In this document: piece after piece, positions 20,866 through 35,588 of the stretch
Position numbering within the stretch: position 1 is the stretch's first letter
Layout: every line of letters begins with the position of its first letter
Made by a program: the position numbers and the translations under genes
Origin: Magallana gigas
Lineage: Eukaryota
Length of the DNA: 64,000 nt
Reading direction: 5' to 3'
NCBI RefSeq assembly: GCF_963853765.1
Contig: NC_088854.1
Location: 28,582,001-28,646,000 of the forward strand
The notes under the pieces: model-generated
Database searches by the model: none
Seen by the model: the letters and a program-made list of their open reading frames with translations, nothing else
What the model was told of the DNA's origin: nothing

Positions 20866-22659
20866 TCACTGTAAATACTTGTATACTAGTACTCTCACTT
20901 TGTTGGTGTAACATTGTCCCACAGAAATATCGTTCTCGTCATCCACCCACACACTAAAAGGCCAATATACCTCTTGTGGTGTGAGTAGTTAAGACAAGTA
21001 CTGACCGTCTTAATCTAGAATATGAACCGAGTCACTGATAAAATCAGAGACCAAGATGTGACCGATGACATCGGTAAATATACCCAAGGGGCTAATCTCT
21101 GGCTTCTGACCTATGTAAGAGAACCTGTATTGTCCGTTTTCACCACCACTATAGCATGTTAGTTAATATCTGATACACAGATATCACCATTGATGTTTTC
21201 TGTGATGTAGCGTGGATAACTATACAGTTCCTGTCCTTCGCTGTCCCTTTGTATGTTCTGTATTTCTTCTCCTTTCTTGTTGTACCTGGTGACTTTAGCC
21301 TCTTTACCATTTACCATCCCGACCAGTATGTCCCCGTTGACGTGGGAGGAGTGTATGCCAATTGGTGTCCATTGTCCTGTTTTAAGGAATTCAATTTCTG
21401 TATCATTTGAATACATTATTATAGCTGTTTATGTATGTATACATCAGATCCCCGTCTTGTGTGACTGTATGGTAGCTATGTTTACCACTGGTTTGTATCC
21501 TCTGCAGCAGATTTCCCTGTAGATCTGTTTTGACAAGGTTACCGGTTAAATCACTAACCCAAAGTCTACCTGATTTATCTAGTGATATATGATATACACG
21601 ATCTACACCTGGTACTTTGTACTTTCTAGCCTGTTTCAATTTCAATAATCGAATGTTCCATTTCGTTAACTTTTTCTACATTATCTGACAACATTGTATC
21701 CAGCAGACATTTTAATGATTCGGTTTCAGTCTTCATTGATGTTCTTATATCATCAATGATGTTTTTGATATCGTTGATATTTTCTTTTATATCTCTTCGC
21801 ATATATTGTGAGTTTGCGATAAAAAGCTGATGTATTTCATAGATTTTTTCTGAATTTCTCTGAATAGATTATCTTTAAATCTTTTAGTTTGTGATTTCCG
21901 TGGTCTGGCATTGCACATTTGGAACATACTGGAACTTGACAGTCCCGACAAAATATGTCTATATCTTTATTTGGATGATCTTTGCATTTTTCCACAGGTA
22001 GTGGTATTTTGCGGTGTCGGTAAAGCCCCTTTCACAATTGGCGCTAAACTACTTTACACCACTTTAATATCGACATTTTTTAGCTTAGCACGAGCTCTCG
22101 CATACGTTGCACGAGCCCTCGCTTACGTTACACGAGCTCTCACGTTCGTTGCATACGTTTTACTGGTCGCATCAAGTCTCCTCTGAATAGTGGATATGTA
22201 CACTATTCAGACACGACCGAACGCGATCCAAATTATCGCAGTGCAACGCATGAACATTTACTTAGTACGAACTTTTTACAACGTTTTGTGTACTCGTAAG
22301 AGTGTTTCACGATTTATAAAGATCGTAAGATAAATCGCTGCTGTTTCATATATTCTCTGTTTAAGAACAAAAATTTACAGTATACATTTATTGCATGATG
22401 GTGAGGGAAATACATGTATGAAGATTTATTTCCTCAAGAAATATCATATTTCCCGAGGGCTTCCCCCGAAAAAAATGTTTTTTTTTCTGGGGAATAAAGC
22501 ATTAATGCAATAAACGTTTTATTATACCAAGCAACATATGATTACACAAAATACGTTGATTTCTAATAATGTTTGACTTTTCAACAGTCGCAACATTAAC
22601 GTCGTGATTGTTTGATTTTCCATGTAGCTGTCTCACTTTTCTGGCTTGGACAGTGCCAT
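20866..22659 (-). pseudogene. B-box/coiled-coil/NHL-propeller (TRIM-like, RING-less) paralog 1, pseudogene
   Basis: AG|ATG at 22659 (MALSKPEK*), then foreign DNA from about 22630 to 22022. It resumes at YRHRKIPLPVEKCKDHPNKDIDIFCRDCQVPVCSKC. An internal deletion at about 21640 removes the linker. There are frameshifts near 21850, 21420 and 21140, and a premature TAA at 21159. The end VYKYLQ* is at 20866. Confidence 0.88.
22022..22300 (+). mobile_element. DNA transposon terminus with 21-bp subterminal repeats, inserted in paralog 1
   Basis: Begins TA|AAGCCCCTTTCACAATTG exactly where the TRIM-like homology breaks. Three 21-bp units (GCACGAGCTCTCGCATACGTT-type) lie at about 22087-22150. No matching second terminus was found. 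Confidence 0.5.
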
Positions 22660-27141: not shown

Positions 27142-28599
27142 ATTTATCAATTATAAATTATTGTATATAAATAGTACAGTATGAATATAGAATAATAAAT
27201 GTGTGTTTTTTCGGTATTTTTTTTCGGTATAATAATTTTTGTTGTTGATATGTTTGAAATTATAATTGAATGTGTGTTTTAAATAAACGGTTAAGTATCA
27301 TTCCATGTCTTTGTTTTCTGTTGTTAGTTTTTTTCGATTTATGGTAATACATATGTTAAAGACATAATTATTTTATATTCGGACGAACAGAGTGAGAAAA
27401 ATTATATAAAAACCAGCCGCAATTCGCGAAGTTTGCGGTCGCGTAAAAGTTTTTTAGGTTGTCTCAATACTTTTAAAATTAATAAGTACTCTCTTTTAAT
27501 GTTTGATTTATTACTGTCTTGTTGTTCTTGAACTTCGTACTTTATTTTTTTTTATTCTCAATAAGAAAAGGATCTTTCAAGTCACGGTAATCACCAACAG
27601 GCAAGAAAGAAAACTATGCATAAAATCCAAGTTTATTTTTAAAACTCTAAAGTTGTTTGGAATATACTAATTTAATTTTAAATATGTTCAATAATTCTGT
27701 TATTAGTTTGATTTTAGTTATATGAATAATATATAGATCCACATGCATGTATATAAAATACTTTTCTTAAGATCGCTGTAGATACTTGTACACTGTCACT
27801 GTGGCTGTGAAACATCTTCCCACATGGATATTGTTCTCGTCATCCACACACACACTACGGGAACAAAATATTTGTTGTGGTATGGGTAATTTAGACAAAA
27901 ACTGACCGTCTTGATCCAGAATATGAACTGTGTTACTAATAAAATTAGAGAACATGATGTGACCGAGGACATCAGTATGTATACTAACTGGGAAAAAGAA
28001 TGATTCCTGACCTCTGTAGGAGAACCTGTGTTGTCCTGATTTATCTACCACCACTACGGCTTGTTCGTAAAAGTCTGATGTACAGATGTCACCATTAATG
28101 TTTTCTGTGATGTAGCGTGGACTACTATACAGTGCCTGTCCTTCGTTGTCCCTCTGTATGGTCTGTATTTCTTCTCCTTTCTTATTGTACCTGGTGGCTT
28201 TAGCCTCAAACCCACCCTTTATCATCCCCACCAGTATGTCCCCATTGATGTGAGAGGAGTGTATGCTGATTGGTGTCCAGCTTCCTGTTTTAATGAATTC
28301 AGTAACTGTATTGTCCAGTGCTAACCTGTTGATAACTTTGTTGACTCTGTCTGTATAGATCAGATCTCCGTCCTGTGTGACTGTGTGGTATCCTGTATCA
28401 TTGCCACTTGTTTGTATCTTCTGTAGCTGATTCCCCTGTAGATCTGTTTGGATAAGGTTACCTTTATCATCACTTACCCAGAGGGTGCCTGATTTACCTA
28501 GTGATACATGATTTACATGATCAACACCTGGAACTGTGTACTCCTTGACCTTGGTGACAAACGTAGACAGAGATAGCATTGATTTCACATAAGATTTCA

Positions 28600-28752
28600 G
28601 AACTATCATTGACCTTTTCAAATTGTTCCTTAGTATGTTTGTCAACATCAGAAGTATCTTTGACGTTTTCCAATTGTTCCTTAGTATGTTTGTCAATATC
28701 AGATTTCTCTTTGACATTTTCCAATCGTTTCTTTTGTATAGTTGTCAATATT
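28600..28752 (-). repeat. Coding minisatellite, 51-bp (17-aa) unit, about 3 copies
   Basis: CAATTGTTCCTTAGTATGTTTGTCAA(C/T)ATCAGA... repeated; translates as (I/V)[12 protein letters not shown](E/D)xSD. Confidence 0.85.
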
Positions 28753-29459
28753 TAAATCTAGTAAAGTTGATGATAGTAATAAAACTACTAATAACATGAA
28801 TATATGAAATAAATGTTTCCTTGTATTATTCTGTGTAGAGGCAGTCTTCATGGTTATCATTTTTCTGCTCATTGGTTTAGTGTCAGGGGCAGTTACTTTA
28901 CCCAAAAGTTTGGTGACATCTTCCTTGCTGTATACACCAGCAGTAAATACTGGAGGGGCTGGTTTGATGGTCTTTGGTGTCGCTTTAGTTTTTAACTTGT
29001 CAGAAAGAGAGAAGATGATGATATTGTTATAAAGTTTAGTAGAGGACAGGTAGCCATTGAGTTCTTTGACATGGACCTCAAGATAGGAGATGTAATCTTG
29101 ACAAGTTTTTTCTTGACTCTGAAAATTTTCAATGATTGACTCTTCAATTTTGTTAAATTGTTCTATGTAATCTGACAACAGTATATCCAGCAGACATTTT
29201 AACGATTCAGTTTCAGTCTTCATTGATCTTCTTATAGCATCCATGATTTCTTTTATATGTTTGGCATTTTCTTTTATATCTCTCTGCATGTCTTGTGAAT
29301 TGGGAATAAAATCTGATGTATTTCACAGATTTTTTCAAGACAAAGAATGAATTTTTCTGAATAGATTATTTCTAAATCTTTTAGCTTGTGTTTTTGGTGA
29401 TCTTGCATTGCACATTTGGAACATACTGGAACTTGACAGTCCTGACAGAGAATGTCTAT

Positions 29460-30602
29460 TTATCTCATACGTGTGGTGTATATTACCCGTGTGATAAACC
29501 TTTGCTATATCACACGGGTGATGCTATATCAAATACTTCCGGTCGGAACTACTTTTGACACAGCCCCTCGCTTCAACGCTTCAGTGATTTGTTAGTACTT
29601 TCAACATAACTATATCAACTACAAAAAGTAGCGATATAAAATGGATTTTGTCAAAGACTTCAATTACTTACAAATCTGAAGGAAAACACATAACTGCGTA
29701 GCATAGGCGTCTGAACCCGGGCTATTGGGGGGGGGGGGGCTTAGCCCTCCCCCCCCCCGGCCCCCACCCAACTCTTTTTACAAAGTTATACATAACTGTA
29801 TCCAAAAGACTTTTTTTTCTTGTTAAGATTTTTGATAAGTTTAGCCCCATTCAAACTTTCAATTTGCTTTGTGTAGTTTATAAAACTGCAAATTACGTTA
29901 ACTATCAACAAGTTCATACTGACGACGCGATGGAAACAGAGCGTACTGGTTGTGCAAATTGTGTTTATATACAAGACCTTACCGAAATAATGTTTCATAA
30001 GACTTTGATTCCACCACCAGTAAGCATCCTTATTCACTATTTTCAATCCCTAATCATTAGGCTGGTGTTTGTGTTATAAAACATCAACAACTGTTCCTTG
30101 TTCGAGTCAATTCAAACTAACGTGCATTCGCAACTTTGTGTATGTCAACAAACTTGATAATTCAAGTCTTCTGATCAGTATTTCCATTTAATCAAATGAA
30201 TAAGCTCTAAGAAAAATTATTTAGAGCTAAAAAACCATTCCAAGGTTTATTTCAGTGATACTTAACATTAAAACAGTTAGATTTAACTCAGAAATGACGT
30301 ACTAAATTGTATTGCGCAAGGTCACAATAACCGGATAACACAACGTTGCATCATCGTTTTTAATCTTTGATAAAAAATCAATTACTTAAATTCGGGTCAT
30401 ATAAGGGACTGTCTCAAAGGCGTCATAATATAAATCAAATTGTATGAGATAAATAGAACATCTATAATTGTGTGATTTTATATTCGCTTTATCCAACTCG
30501 TTGAAATGGTTATATTCGCTCGGCAAGCCTCGCGAATATATACACCATTTCAACTCGTTGGATAAAGCAAATATAAAATCACACAATATAGATATCCTCT
30601 AT
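29460..30602. mobile_element. Composite insertion within B-box 2 of paralog 2, palindrome-terminated (Crypton-like)
   Basis: Interrupts the D-I-D-I-L-C codons that are contiguous in copies 1 and 3. Flanked by the 5-bp direct repeat TCTAT (29455-29459 and 30598-30602). A palindrome of about 145 bp lies at 30455-30602. Confidence 0.75.
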
Positions 30603-32416
30603 ATCTTAATTTGGATGATCTTTGCACTTCTCCACTGGTAATCGTATTTTTCGCTGTCGGTAAGGAACCACTTCATGGTTCTTGGTTTCCGGACTCTTCT
30701 GATGTTTATCCCTGCAGTGTTTACACATCGGTCGGTGACAGGGATTGCAGTAAAACTGACAGTTCTTCTTACATTCTTCATTACCACACACCAAGTAGTG
30801 CTGGGCAACCACTGGTAGGTCTGGAACAGTATTTGGAACATCTGGCTTGGACAATGCCATCTGAAATCGATATTTTTTCATAATTTTGCTGAGTCCATTT
30901 GATTTTGCAGTAAGATAAAATCGATTGTTTGTACAAATGAAAGCCTATTTAGGTAATTATGTGTGTACAATTGTATGACTATTTTTGACATTAATAATTG
31001 TTTCAATCGATATATACAAGTAATTAGTTTTATGACCCACCTTGTTCCGACAAATCTTTACATAAAGTCTCGCAATATCAAAGTTTAACTTGGCGTGATG
31101 CGAGACTATGCGAGATCTTATGACACTTCCTATCTGTATGTTAAAATAGCCATATGGCCTATTAAAGGCAAATCAATTAGATCGTACAAATTTTTATCTG
31201 TCACATTTTTATACCTAGTACAGATAATCAAAGGGGTAAACGGCGTAGCTTGGCTAATATTTTGATATGAATTAGAGTGCAGATATTTGTTGGGAATAAA
31301 AAAGAATTTCGGATTAGAACTGCAATTTAACTCATACCGACAGAGTAAAAAGTATTGTTATTGTTGTTACATATAGAACGCACAACACGTGCCTTGCGTT
31401 ATTTTTTTTATGAAAAAAAAAATATATCTACACCTAATAATACTTTTGTGTATATTATTATTTGGTAAAGGGAATAATTTTATATTTTATAGGGTAAGGG
31501 GTATATATTTCATACGAAAAAATTACATAATGCAGTGGTCTGCGTTTGAACGATGCATGGCGTTTTCAACGCTACTGCGCACGAGCGCAAATCAGTTGCT
31601 CAGAATCTATAGAATTCCGGCGAATATTTAGTAACTACGTAGAGCAATATGCCTTAAGAATGTCGATTAACATCATATTCTCTAACTTAATTTTGAGTTA
31701 ATTTTATTTTATTTTAATTTTTTAAAAACACTTTTTATTGCATATTACTCCACATGTGAAAAGAGTGGCCTGCATGTTGATAACGTTCAGATCAATGTTC
31801 ATCATGTCGTTCCGTGTATGTTGCATGTTTACATGTTAGGTACTAGCAAGATAAAAATCTTTTGGATTCCAACTGATGACATTTCTGTAATAATGAGATA
31901 ATCTGAACAAAAAATCAATTTTTTAATTAATCAACCACCTAAAATTGGGGGGGGGGGGGCAAAAAGCTACATTAATTTACATGTGCTTTAACCTTAACCT
32001 AAAAATTGAAAGCGTGTTTTATTTTCGTTTGTATTAATTTAATCCGTTGCACCTACTTCATGTGTATGTCACGCTTGTAGAAAATTAATTTAAACAATAA
32101 CATTTTTTCTTATATACGATATTTTCTTTATTCTCAGCAAGATAAGGATCAAGATAAGGATCTTTAAGGCCTAAAAATCACTAAGATTTAAAAATGAAAC
32201 ATTATTATTACATGCATACATGTTTATATTTCAAAACCCAGATTTAAGTCGTTTGGAATGTACTATACGTATACGATTTTAACTTTGTTAAGCAATATTG
32301 AAACCAAATATTACTCTTTTGCAAAACACAAGATTAAATTTGTTGAAAATAGTTTATTTTAATTAGCTATATAAATAACATGAAGATCATACATTTATGT
32401 ATATTCAATACTTTTC

Positions 32417-33418
32417 TTATGCGAAATATCTTTGTAAATACTTGTACACTGTCACTTTGTTAGTGTTACATTGTCCAACATGAATATCGTTCTCATCATC
32501 CACCAATAAACTTATGGGACAATCTAACTCTTGTGGTGTGAGTAATTTTGACAAATATTTACCGTTCTGATCTAGAATATGAACAGAGTCACTCATAAAA
32601 TCAGAGACCAGAATGTGACCGATGACATTAGTACGTATACCATAGGGGGGAATCTTTGACCTCTTTGACCTCTGACCAGTGTAGGAGAATCTGCGTTGTC
32701 CTGATTTATTTACCACCACTACGGTTTTGTTGTCATAATCTGATGTACAGGTATCACCGTTGATGTTTTCTGTGATGTAGTGTGTTGTACCATACAGTTC
32801 CTGTCCTTTGTTGTCCTTCTGTATGTTCTGTATTTCTTCTCCTTTCTTGTTGTACCTGGTGACTCTAGCCCCTCCACCATCCTTTCTCATCCCCACCAGT
32901 ATGTCCCCGTTGATGTGGGAGGAGTGTATGCTGATTGGTGTCCAGTCTCCTGTTTTAATGAATTCAGTAACTGAATTATCAAGTGTTACCTTATTAATGA
33001 CCTTGTTTTCTTTGTCTGTATAGATCAGATCCCCGTCTTGAGTGACTGTGTGGTAGCCATATTTACCACTAGTTTGTATCTTCTGTAGCTGATGTCCTTG
33101 TAGATCTGTTTGGACAAGGTTACCGGTTAAATCACTAACCCAGATTCTACCTGATTTACCTAGTGATATATGATATACATGATCTACACCAGGTACTGTG
33201 TACTCCCTGACCTTGATGACAGAGGAAGACAGAGAGTGTATTGGTTTCACATCCAATTTTTCTTCATCGATTTTCAATTGTTCGCTTGTATGGTTTTCTA
33301 TATTTGAATCAGGCAAGGATGATAATAAAAACAAAAAAATTATAGATAAAAATAAAAAATAAAATAAATGTCTACTTGTACTATAATGCTTTGTTGAAGC
33401 AGTCTCCGTGGGTTTCAT
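32417..33418 (-). CDS. Intact 333-aa ORF: short N-tail, 18-aa hydrophobic anchor, stalk and six-bladed NHL-like beta-propeller (3' half of paralog 3)
   Basis: ORF track. [30 protein letters not shown] is followed by [56 protein letters not shown], colinear with the propeller of copies 1 and 2. Whether it is expressed as a separate protein is unknown. Confidence 0.6.
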
Positions 33419-34234
33419 TTTTCTGTTCTTTGTAGTAGTGTCAGGAACAGTTACTCTACCAAAAAGGTTGGTGACATCCTCCTTGTTGTATTTACCAGCA
33501 GCAAATTCTTTTTAGCTGGTCAGAAAGAGAGAAAATGAGTGGATTGTTAAGTTTAGAAGATGACAGGTAGCCATTGAACTCTTTGACACGGTCTTCAAGA
33601 TAGGAGATGTAATCTTGACACGTTTTGTCTTGACATTGAAGATTTTCAATTATTGAATGTTCCATTTCGTTAACTTGTCCTGTATTATCTGACAACACTG
33701 TATCCAGCACACATTTTAGCGCCTCGGTTTCATTCTTCATCAATCTTCTTATATCATCCATGATGTCTTTTATATCTTTGATATTTTCTTGTATATCTCT
33801 CTGCATACCTTGTGAATTTGGGATAAAATACTGATGTATTTCATTGACTTTTTCACGACATAGAGTGAATTTCTCTGAATATATTGTCTCTAAATCTTTT
33901 AGTTTGTGATTTTCATGGTGTTCCATTGCACATTTGTAACATATTGGAGCTTGACAGTCCTGACAGAGAATGTCTATATCCTTATTTGGATGGTCTCTGC
34001 ATTTCTCCGCAGGTAGTTGCATTTTGCGTCTTTGGTAAATGACCACTTCATGATTCTTGGTATCTGGACTCACCTGATGTTTATTTCTGCATTGTTCACA
34101 CAATTTTCGAAAACAATGATTGCAGTAAAATTGGAGTTCTTGTTACATTCTTCATTATCACACACCAAGTAGTGCTGAGCAACCACTGGTATGTCTGGAA
34201 CAGTGTTTGGAACATCTGCTTTGGATAATGCCAT
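33419..34234 (-). pseudogene. 5' half of TRIM-like paralog 3 (B-box x2 + coiled coil), frameshifted
   Basis: AG|ATG at 34234 (MALSKADVPNT..CDNEEC). A 1-nt deletion at about 34134 shifts the frame. The B-box/coiled-coil frame is open from 34133 to 33492. A 38-nt deletion relative to copy 2 at about 33505 produces KRICCW*. Confidence 0.85.
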
Positions 34235-34249
34235 CTGAAATCGAAATTT

Positions 34250-34315
34250 TTTATACCCCCGCTCCGAAGGAGAGGGGGTATACTGTTTTACCCTTGTGTG
34301 TCTGTCTGTCCGTCC

Positions 34316-34369
<54 letters not shown>

Positions 34370-35588
34370 CTGTCCGTCCGTAACAAAAATTTCTGTCGCA
34401 TTTATCGCAGCAACTATTTATCGCAGATGCTTGAAATTTTAACACAGTGTTTGTTAAGGCATGCCATATCGTGGGATATAATTTTGTACCAATCGGACGT
34501 CAACTTCCTGTTAAATGACGATTTTGCTTATTTTTTAACCAAAATTATCAAACAAATTTTCGTCAAAGATTTCTCAGCAACTGTTTATTGCAGATGCTTG
34601 AAATTTTTACACAGTATTTGTATAGGCATGCCATATCGTGGGATATATTTTTGTACCAATCAGACGTCAACTTCCTGTTAAATGACGACTTTGTTTATTT
34701 TTAGCAAAACTTTTCAAACAAATTTCCGTCAAAGAATTCTCAGCAACTGTTTACCGCAGATGCTTGAAATTTTTACACAGTATTTGTATAGGCATGCTAT
34801 ATCGTGGGATATATTTTTGTACCAATCAGACGTCAACTTCCTGTTTAATGACAACTTTGTTTATTTTTAGCAAAACTTTTCAAACAAATTTCTGTCAAAG
34901 AATTCTCAGCAACTGTTTATCGCAGATGCTTGAAATTTTTACACAGTATTTGTATAGGCATGCTATATCATGGGATGTATTTTTGTACCAATCGGACGTC
35001 AACTTCCTGTTAAATGACGACTTTGTTTTTTTTTAGCCAAAATTTTCAAATAAATTTTCATCAAAGATTTCTCAGCAGCTATTTTTGGAGATGCTTGAAA
35101 TTTGTACACAGTGTTTGTTTAGGCATGCCATATTGGGGGATATATTTTTGTATCAATCAGATGTCAACTTCCTGTTAAATAATGACTTTGTTTATTTTTA
35201 GCCAAAATATTCAAACAAATTTTCGTCAAAGATTTCTCAGCAGCTACTTATCGGAGATGCTTGAAATTTTTACACAGTGTTTGTTAAGGCATGCCATATT
35301 GTGGGATATATTTTTTTACCAATCGGACGTCATCTTCCTGTTAAATGAGTACTTTGTTTATTTTAGCCAAAATTTTCAAACAAATTTTCCTCAAAGATTT
35401 CTCAGCAGCTAATTATCGCAGATGCTTGAAATTTTAACACACTATTTGTTTAGGCATGCCATATTGTTGGATATATTTCTGTACCAATCGGATGCCAGCT
35501 TTCTGTTAAATGTCGACTTTGCTTATTTTGCATATTCACATCAGAGCGGGGGTATCACTAGTGAGCATTGGCTCACAGATATCTTGTT
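34250..35588 (+). mobile_element. Helentron-associated non-autonomous element (HINE/DINE-like) with an internal satellite array
   Basis: Inserted in a T-run. 12-bp subterminal inverted repeats ATACCCCCGCTC (34253) and GAGCGGGGGTAT (35544). (CTGT)n microsatellite at about 34299-34380. About 7 tandem units of about 166 bp. 3' stem-loop GTGAGC-ATTG-GCTCAC at 35561-35576. Absent from copies 1 and 2. Confidence 0.88.

Follow-up and report, generated by a model that had tools for sequence, protein, structure and literature searches.

A hydrophobic linker insertion in oyster B-box/coiled-coil/NHL genes: broken copies in Magallana gigas and intact relatives predicted to be type II membrane proteins

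Background

TRIM-like B-box/NHL genes rank among the largest lineage-specific expansions of bivalves, and their products are assumed to be cytosolic. A 64,000-nucleotide (nt) stretch of the Magallana gigas genome (contig NC_088854.1, positions 28,582,001 to 28,646,000; G000:C2:28582001-28646000), which we call the window, carries three members of this family, all on the minus strand, numbered here copies 1 to 3. A preliminary description of the window, made from its letters alone, reported a hydrophobic segment between the coiled coil and the propeller of copies 2 and 3 and took these genes for candidate type II membrane receptors, descended from an ancestral gene with the B-boxes and coiled coil in the cytosol and the propeller on the cell surface or in the lumen. 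Does this locus record the conversion of a cytosolic scaffold into a membrane protein, or an accident tolerated in decaying genes? The answer has two parts: (i) the window genes themselves fall away as receptors, as copies 2 and 3 are pseudogenes in this haplotype, broken by frameshifts and, in copy 2, also by a transposon; (ii) intact genes of this architecture, under constraint, occur in both M. gigas and C. angulata, and for these members insertion into a membrane in type II orientation is the best-supported reading, to which we give slightly better than even credence on the evidence of the sequences.

Results

The hydrophobic segment and its distribution in the family

Translation confirms the hydrophobic stretch in the window: both copies 2 and 3 encode 18 apolar residues between the coiled coil and the propeller, and translations and coordinates agree with those of the preliminary description (Table 1). 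Pfam models place a B-box upstream of the stretch (PF00643, E 1.3e-8 in copy 3, and E 3.4e-4, below the Pfam curated cut-off, in copy 2) and an NHL-like propeller downstream of it (Vgb_lyase and SGL models, sub-threshold) in the open reading frames (ORFs) of the window. Copies 2 and 3 are sister genes in the maximum-likelihood tree (support 100/98); since they are sisters and one insertion is common to their clade, the equivalent position of the stretch reflects inheritance and not coincidence.

The linker, transmembrane (TM) segment and first-blade peptide of copy 3, searched in six frames against the whole genome, recovered 127 family loci, most of them single open frames of about 570-600 amino acids (aa), few of which match across the hydrophobic part. 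The insertion is absent from more than 120 M. gigas paralogs and is found in 7 loci on three chromosomes, a set confirmed by two further searches. In the alignment it forms a clean insertion of about 30 aa after ...METASTQ, a point at which all other paralogs are contiguous. In a maximum-likelihood tree built without the columns of the insert, a single branch separates all 14 TM-bearing rows from the others (1 change, support 63/90), in keeping with the common origin of the TM segment in oyster B-box/NHL genes that the preliminary description had put forward for testing; a clade with support 100/99 encloses the 14 TM rows plus three non-TM genes, and the window copies adjoin the group of locus L002 and proteins P0001-P0005. 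The simplest reading of these sequences is that the insertion arose once. A coiled-coil cysteine (LKCLL; residue 175 of P0003, alignment column 182), present in 12 of the 14 TM-clade rows and in none of 50 other paralogs, is a marker of the clade.

No donor of the insert was found in a whole-genome DNA search, which matched clade members alone, and blastn-short and tblastx comparisons of the insert with the gene and with its paralogs yielded nothing above chance. Among relatives, a word-indexed search with the TM region returned only M. gigas and C. angulata proteins and allele fragments. An exhaustive profile search of 1.84 billion representatives likewise yielded TM members from these two species only, which is weak evidence of absence, as 50%-identity clustering may hide others.

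The parent family occupies very large tandem clusters of single-exon genes (C4:36.6-47.1 Mb, C7:25-28 Mb, C1:51.6-51.8 Mb and C10:26.7-28.8 Mb), and among its more than 120 scored loci about a quarter have shortened open frames by a rough count. Locus L003 and its C. angulata ortholog P0008 share an 18-aa duplication inside a propeller blade, and both frames are open.

Predicted membrane helix and protein structure

By all three measures applied, the insert falls in the range of TM helices, in agreement with the segment being a predicted TM helix. Its Kyte-Doolittle maximum over 19 residues (KD19) is 2.2-2.6 in most TM members and 1.76 in L003 and P0008, always located on the insert; copies 3 and 2 score 2.33 and 2.27 within a clade range of 1.76-2.58, whereas 23 non-TM paralogs have a KD19 maximum of at most 1.8, which lies in a propeller strand. 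The Hessa-type sum runs from about -2.3 to +2 in the TM clade (-1.4 in copy 3) versus +4 to +11 in non-TM paralogs. The Eisenberg mean hydrophobicity is 0.78-0.88 with a hydrophobic moment of 0.03-0.15 (0.88 and 0.03 in copy 3), and so low a moment indicates a uniformly apolar helix rather than an amphipathic one.

The AlphaFold2 model of P0003 comprises two B-boxes, a single long helix at residues 115-225, which is the predicted coiled coil, a low-confidence linker at 228-347 and a confident six-bladed propeller (predicted local distance difference test score about 88); a helix at 303-319 stands within the otherwise disordered linker. The TM segment is thus internal, at residues ~303-322 of ~612, with the propeller behind it. 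In Foldseek searches the best matches of the modelled propeller were the NHL domains of TRIM2, TRIM3, Thin, TRIM71 and Brat (target-normalised template-modelling score 0.71-0.79 against stand-alone NHL chains, E down to 1e-15), and PF01436 is recorded for many paralogs. In the alignment of the family, the columns of the B-box Cys/His ligands do not vary. A RING domain is absent: the proteins begin about 20 residues before B-box 1, and Pfam gives only zf-B_box and an ANCHR-like B-box. The N-terminus (MALSKPDAPKTV...) is hydrophilic with no apparent signal peptide, and the insert is the sole KD19 maximum above 1.6.

Intact relatives and selection

The preliminary description had left it to be seen whether any intact TM-bearing homolog exists in another haplotype or species. 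Such homologs occur in both M. gigas and C. angulata as full-length ORFs of 609-627 aa (P0001-P0005 and P0008): P0001, P0003 (= K1Q5F3) and P0005 come from other M. gigas assemblies, and P0002, P0004 and P0008, the ortholog of L003, from C. angulata. Pairwise ratios of nonsynonymous to synonymous divergence (dN/dS) are 0.36-0.60 in the TM clade versus 0.38-0.57 among non-TM paralogs, with a synonymous divergence (dS) of 0.4-0.6 between deep clade members. In a neutral simulation run from one core to the observed differences, the observed hydrophobicity was reached in 0.05-4% of trials for most pairs (P 0.0005-0.04), with L003 as the exception; these values are indicative only, because the registers were ungapped and the counts of differences are inflated as a result. 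The clade was not shown to decay faster than the family: long open frames make up 4 of 7 loci versus about three quarters of the family (approximate hand count, Fisher P ~0.4).

Many transcriptome-sized runs contain words of a 401-nt stretch that has the L002 TM segment at its centre, with a share of 0.36-0.48, comparable to the 0.43-0.55 of DNA runs. These shares, which are not localisable within the 401 nt, are consistent with expression of the intact paralogs. Both M. gigas and C. angulata possess intact and constrained genes of this architecture, which are probably expressed.

Predicted orientation of the helix and possible adaptation of the propeller

A single apolar helix behind a folded N-terminus of ~300 aa without a signal peptide normally inserts with the N-terminus in the cytosol, that is, in type II orientation. 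Since a zinc-binding, coiled-coil N-terminus of this size without signal peptide precedes the helix, type II is the best guess and the likeliest orientation predicted for the intact members. The propeller differs from that of the paralogs at two sites. An NKT sequon (...RYNKTG...) is kept in 44 of 50 non-TM paralogs and in 4 of 4 nearest non-TM relatives and is absent from 13 of the 14 clade rows, which have five other states (NKR, NKK, SKT, DKT and TTS); the cysteine of LVCD, found in all 50 non-TM paralogs, has given way to Ala or Ser in 12 of the 14 rows of the clade. Both losses would fit a changed compartment for the propeller, and we regard them as suggestive.

Decay and transcription of the window copies

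Copy 3 is split into three open frames (34070-34234, 33492-34103 and 32417-33418), across which tblastn with the intact paralog L002 matched residues 1-610. Its B-box 1 lesion is a missing base: in an X2 contig one more C stands behind 34134, and the Logan contig L055 has an extra G, reading AACTGCCAA. In the linker at ~33509, copy 2 reads KTKATPKTIKPAPPVFTAG, whereas copy 3 passes from LKR straight to FAAGKY; 37(+1) extra letters stand at this point in X1 and X2 contigs, and the missing stretch is present in the alleles L055 and L056, where it reads ..INPIPETTT.VPP... Other haplotypes have lesions of their own. X1 has a 5-nt deletion at 33676. L055 has gained 8 nt in B-box 2 and 1 nt after the TM segment and has lost 2 nt from the T tract within this segment; the T-rich tract is indel-prone. 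L056 has gained 1 nt in the linker and lost 4 nt from blade 1. The X2 haplotype has no disabling indel within the ~960 nt covered. The window allele of copy 3 is null, and, as the differing lesions in reads and contigs of other oysters attest, the gene is decaying, with several independent null alleles in the population. In one of these alleles (L055:665-1336, protein P0166) the ORF ends a few residues past the hydrophobic helix.

Copy 2 consists of ORFs 30606-30881, 28699-29289 and 27767-28717. Right after NYTKE a +1 frameshift leads to a stop at 28699; both are common to the alleles L057 and L058 and to the 56-member cluster of P0171 (Logan ORF fragments), which marks copy 2 as an older pseudogene. 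A further frameshift lies inside a 51-bp tandem repeat, which varies in length between individuals (a 44-nt indel between L057/L058 and the window). The ORF 28699-29289 (196 aa, P0171) ends shortly after the helix, which gives it a coiled-coil-plus-C-terminal-TM layout like that of TRIM13 and TRIM59. The 1,144-bp element in B-box 2 has at least 40 full-length copies elsewhere in the genome at 84-94% identity (1,092 first-look candidates), includes a 44-nt hairpin at 30467-30587, shows high read depth and is abundant in RNA libraries. Copy 1 covers only residues 198-351 of L002, without the linker and TM region.

Transcription was followed by the read depth of four runs. The 1.4-kb intergenic region 30961-32339 has zero depth, the body of copy 3 a depth of ~3-8, and the few reads of the stranded poly-A run are oriented as expected of minus-strand RNA. 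Record 6 of the X1 contigs (801 nt; RNA status guessed) spans 32926-33694 and crosses the TM-coding segment without a skip, and no splice joint at 33298-33381 appears in any of the four runs. Retention of this segment, which the preliminary description had made a point for RNA sequencing, is upheld in that contig; removal of the T-rich segment as an 84-nt GT..AG intron was rejected. Copy 3 is still transcribed despite its null alleles.

Three further observations concern the upstream side of copy 3. A splice acceptor (tttcag|ATG) lies immediately 5' of its ATG. A (TGTC)21 microsatellite together with a repeated element fills 34247-34378, some 15-20 nt ahead of the start of copy 3. Many reads that stem from other genomic copies part from the window at 34247-34251, and since the upstream sequence of L055 differs, this segment resembles an insertion into the 5' intron that is specific to the haplotype. 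Beyond it, a tandem array at 34408-35529 (period 166/331 bp, 3.4-6.8 copies, 87-90% matches) gives repeated plus-strand ORF peptides (...MLEIFTQYLYRHAISWDIFLYQSDVNFL...) and is probably a satellite, not a gene.

Table 1. Coordinates of the family copies and their features in the window, and genomic loci carrying the insertion
Feature	Position	Strand	Details
Copy 3	32417..34234	-	Single-exon B-box1/B-box2/coiled-coil/linker/TM/NHL gene; ORFs, Pfam, tblastn
Copy 3 hydrophobic core, predicted TM helix	33314..33367	-	18 residues; translation
Copy 3 N-H-T sequon, C-terminal to TM segment	33287..33295	-	Translation
Copy 3 B-box 1, site of 1-nt deletion	34127..34134	-	Frame change between ORFs 34070-34234 and 33492-34103
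Copy 3 linker, site of 38-nt frame-breaking deletion	33495..33510	-	Specific to window haplotype; comparison with copy 2
Copy 2	27767..30881	-	Gene type as copy 3; ORFs, tblastn
Copy 2 hydrophobic core, then NYT	28759..28812	-	LFHIFMLLVVLLLSSTLL; translation
Copy 2 tandem repeat in linker after TM	28597..28748	-	51 bp (17 codons), 3 copies; Tandem Repeats Finder
Dispersed repeat (non-autonomous transposon) in copy 2 B-box 2	29462..30605		1,144 bp; breaks ...KCKDHPN / KDIDILCQDC
Copy 1, fragmentary pseudogene of the TM clade	20869..22022	-	tblastn pieces, several frames
TM locus L002	C3:27.753 Mb		611 aa
TM locus L004	C3:27.746 Mb		570 aa, C-terminally truncated; identical to RefSeq model P0006
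TM locus L003	C7:24.620 Mb		627 aa
TM locus L006	C7:25.641 Mb		543 aa, truncated
TM locus, unnamed	C7:25.636 Mb		Broken fragment
TM loci, copies 2 and 3	Window (C2)		Broken

Discussion

Proposed explanation

The pathway that we propose starts from a RING-less B-box/coiled-coil/NHL gene, in which about 30 residues would have been inserted once, probably within the Magallana lineage, into the linker between coiled coil and propeller. The insertion would have made a uniformly hydrophobic helix of 17-21 residues, and its descendants would be the small sub-family of 7 loci on three chromosomes, with the window copies as dead representatives. An intact member would fold its two B-boxes and its coiled coil in the cytosol, the helix would then serve as an internal signal-anchor, and the protein would reside in the ER-derived (endoplasmic reticulum-derived) membrane system in type II orientation, with a lumenal or extracellular propeller. 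Membrane insertion and topology are predicted here from sequence features, as would be any surface location or receptor role. The fuller account, in which one short insertion turned a cytosolic scaffold into a type II membrane protein whose propeller then adapted by repeated loss of the sequon and a free cysteine, is tentative, and we hold it at somewhat under even confidence.

Several findings weigh against membrane insertion in type II orientation or against its importance. On the side of the genes, L002, with its Cys-to-Phe change in B-box 1, and L003, with its 18-aa blade duplication, are the only full-length members in this genome, many clade members are broken or truncated, and TM members were found only in M. 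gigas and C. angulata, two very close species. On the side of the helix, the prediction comes from general hydrophobicity scales and an AlphaFold2 model, the segment of L003 and P0008 is marginal (KD 1.76, 16-17 apolar residues), and the read-through of copy 3 comes from X1, which is transcriptome-sized, of guessed RNA status, and has 4 gap letters somewhere in 32926-33509 of record 6. On the side of orientation, the propeller retains three cysteines, an odd number for an oxidising compartment, and the sequon and cysteine contrasts represent one TM origin and not independent replicates, a single early loss requiring about as many steps as parallel losses. The two signals from which the preliminary description had read the topology, basic residues before the helix and an N-x-T sequon after it, stand in the window copies but not across the clade. 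Only copy 2 (NYT), copy 3 and P0007 keep the post-TM sequon, whose place is taken by NIDDHT or NIYDHT in the main intact L002 group; the K/R charge of the flanks is +2/+3 on the N-terminal versus +1/+2 on the C-terminal side in the window copies, whereas it is +1/+2 versus +3/+4 in the intact L002 group, so that the positive-inside bias is neutral or reversed there. Neither generalises as a topology signal.

Alternative explanations

Could the segment be a functionless by-product, a T-rich, slippage-prone insertion tolerated in the disordered linker of a redundant family, in a clade that is now decaying and yields no useful membrane protein? Much of the wreckage described above invites this view: lesions break all three window copies and the C7:25636k locus, L004 and L006 are cut short, copy 3 occurs in at least three different null haplotypes, one of them (L055) with a 2-nt indel in the T tract itself, the B-box 1 of L002 has lost a cysteine, no donor or functional source of the insert was found, and the clade is limited to two very close species. 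It is harder to reconcile with full-length ORFs persisting in several paralogs of two species, with dN/dS values well below 1 and not above those of the rest of the family, with a hydrophobicity that exceeds the neutral expectation over a dS of ~0.5, and with a clade that reached three chromosomes after the insertion; moreover, the hand-counted share of long frames (4/7 versus about three quarters) does not differ significantly from that of the family. We consider a by-product unlikely, while granting it real weight.

Two other explanations keep the propeller in the cytosol or remove the helix from the protein. The helix might anchor the protein with a cytosolic propeller, either as a monotopic or hairpin segment or, in truncated alleles, as a tail anchor like those of TRIM13 and TRIM59; flank charges that do not favour a cytosolic N-terminus in the intact group, the cytosol-type free cysteines of the propeller, and the ends of P0171 (copy 2) and P0166 (a copy 3 allele) just past the helix are what this explanation would predict. 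The folded domain of ~280 aa behind the helix rules out tail anchoring in the intact genes, though, the core of 17-21 uniformly apolar residues has neither the length nor the central break typical of hairpins, and the losses of the NKT sequon and the LVCD cysteine better suit lumenal exposure, which leaves an anchor of this kind improbable. That the T-rich segment is a small intron absent from the mature mRNA deserves hardly any credence: the weak in-frame GT..AG of copy 3 and the acceptor right before its ATG are outweighed by reads without a joint and an X1 contig that reads through, by the absence of such a GT..AG in copy 2 and the other clade members, by retention of the segment in RefSeq and UniProt models, and by a coding part that is otherwise single-exon across the family.

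Relation to known systems

The clade has no RING domain, a defining feature of TRIM proteins proper, and belongs to the bivalve-expanded RING-less B-box/NHL family; its C-terminal six-bladed propeller is that of class VII-like TRIM-NHL proteins. The bivalve RING-less B-box/coiled-coil/NHL proteins, named 'TRIM2/3/71-like' or 'PML-like', are the same family, with 54-67% full-length identity, and share with the clade the two B-boxes, long helix, linker, six-bladed NHL propeller and single-exon coding; the clade differs by gain of the ~30-aa hydrophobic insertion and the LKCLL cysteine and by loss of the LVCD cysteine and the NKT sequon. TRIM2, TRIM3, TRIM71/LIN-41, Thin and Brat have the propeller fold and the B-box plus coiled-coil layout in common with it. 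However, these TRIM-NHL proteins of vertebrates and insects bind RNA or protein in the cytosol and have no TM segment, their propellers are only 16-20% identical to those of the clade, and the clade has neither their RING nor their filamin domain.

Teneurins, in which a single TM helix of type II orientation separates a large N-terminal domain in the cytosol from an extracellular propeller of NHL type, are a functional analogue. They also have EGF repeats, a YD shell and a toxin-like domain, which the clade does not; homology does not extend beyond the generic propeller, and the nearest structural neighbours of the clade propeller are TRIM NHL domains, not teneurin.

The only TRIM proteins described with a TM segment after the coiled coil are those of class XI (TRIM13/RFP2 and TRIM59), which are vertebrate-restricted and have a RING (PMC3503706, which refers to Lerner et al. 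2007). Their TM segment is C-terminal with nothing behind it, whereas that of the clade is internal and followed by the ~280-aa propeller in a protein without RING, and its origin is independent. No description of a B-box/NHL protein with an internal TM segment before the NHL propeller was found in the searchable literature, so the impression that the architecture is undescribed holds as far as that literature goes.

Conclusions

For the window itself, the consequence is practical: the two genes represented by copies 2 and 3 should be annotated as pseudogenes, and copy 3 is a presence/null polymorphism of a kind common among oysters. For the family, the coexistence of intact, truncated and dead copies points to a recent event, and the sister paralogs would offer a natural control for the adaptation of a cytosolic fold to the secretory pathway. 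If the predicted membrane topology is right, an insertion of ~90 nt can shift a ligand-binding domain across a membrane, and the clade would represent a recent, datable birth of a membrane receptor architecture inside an immune-type gene expansion.

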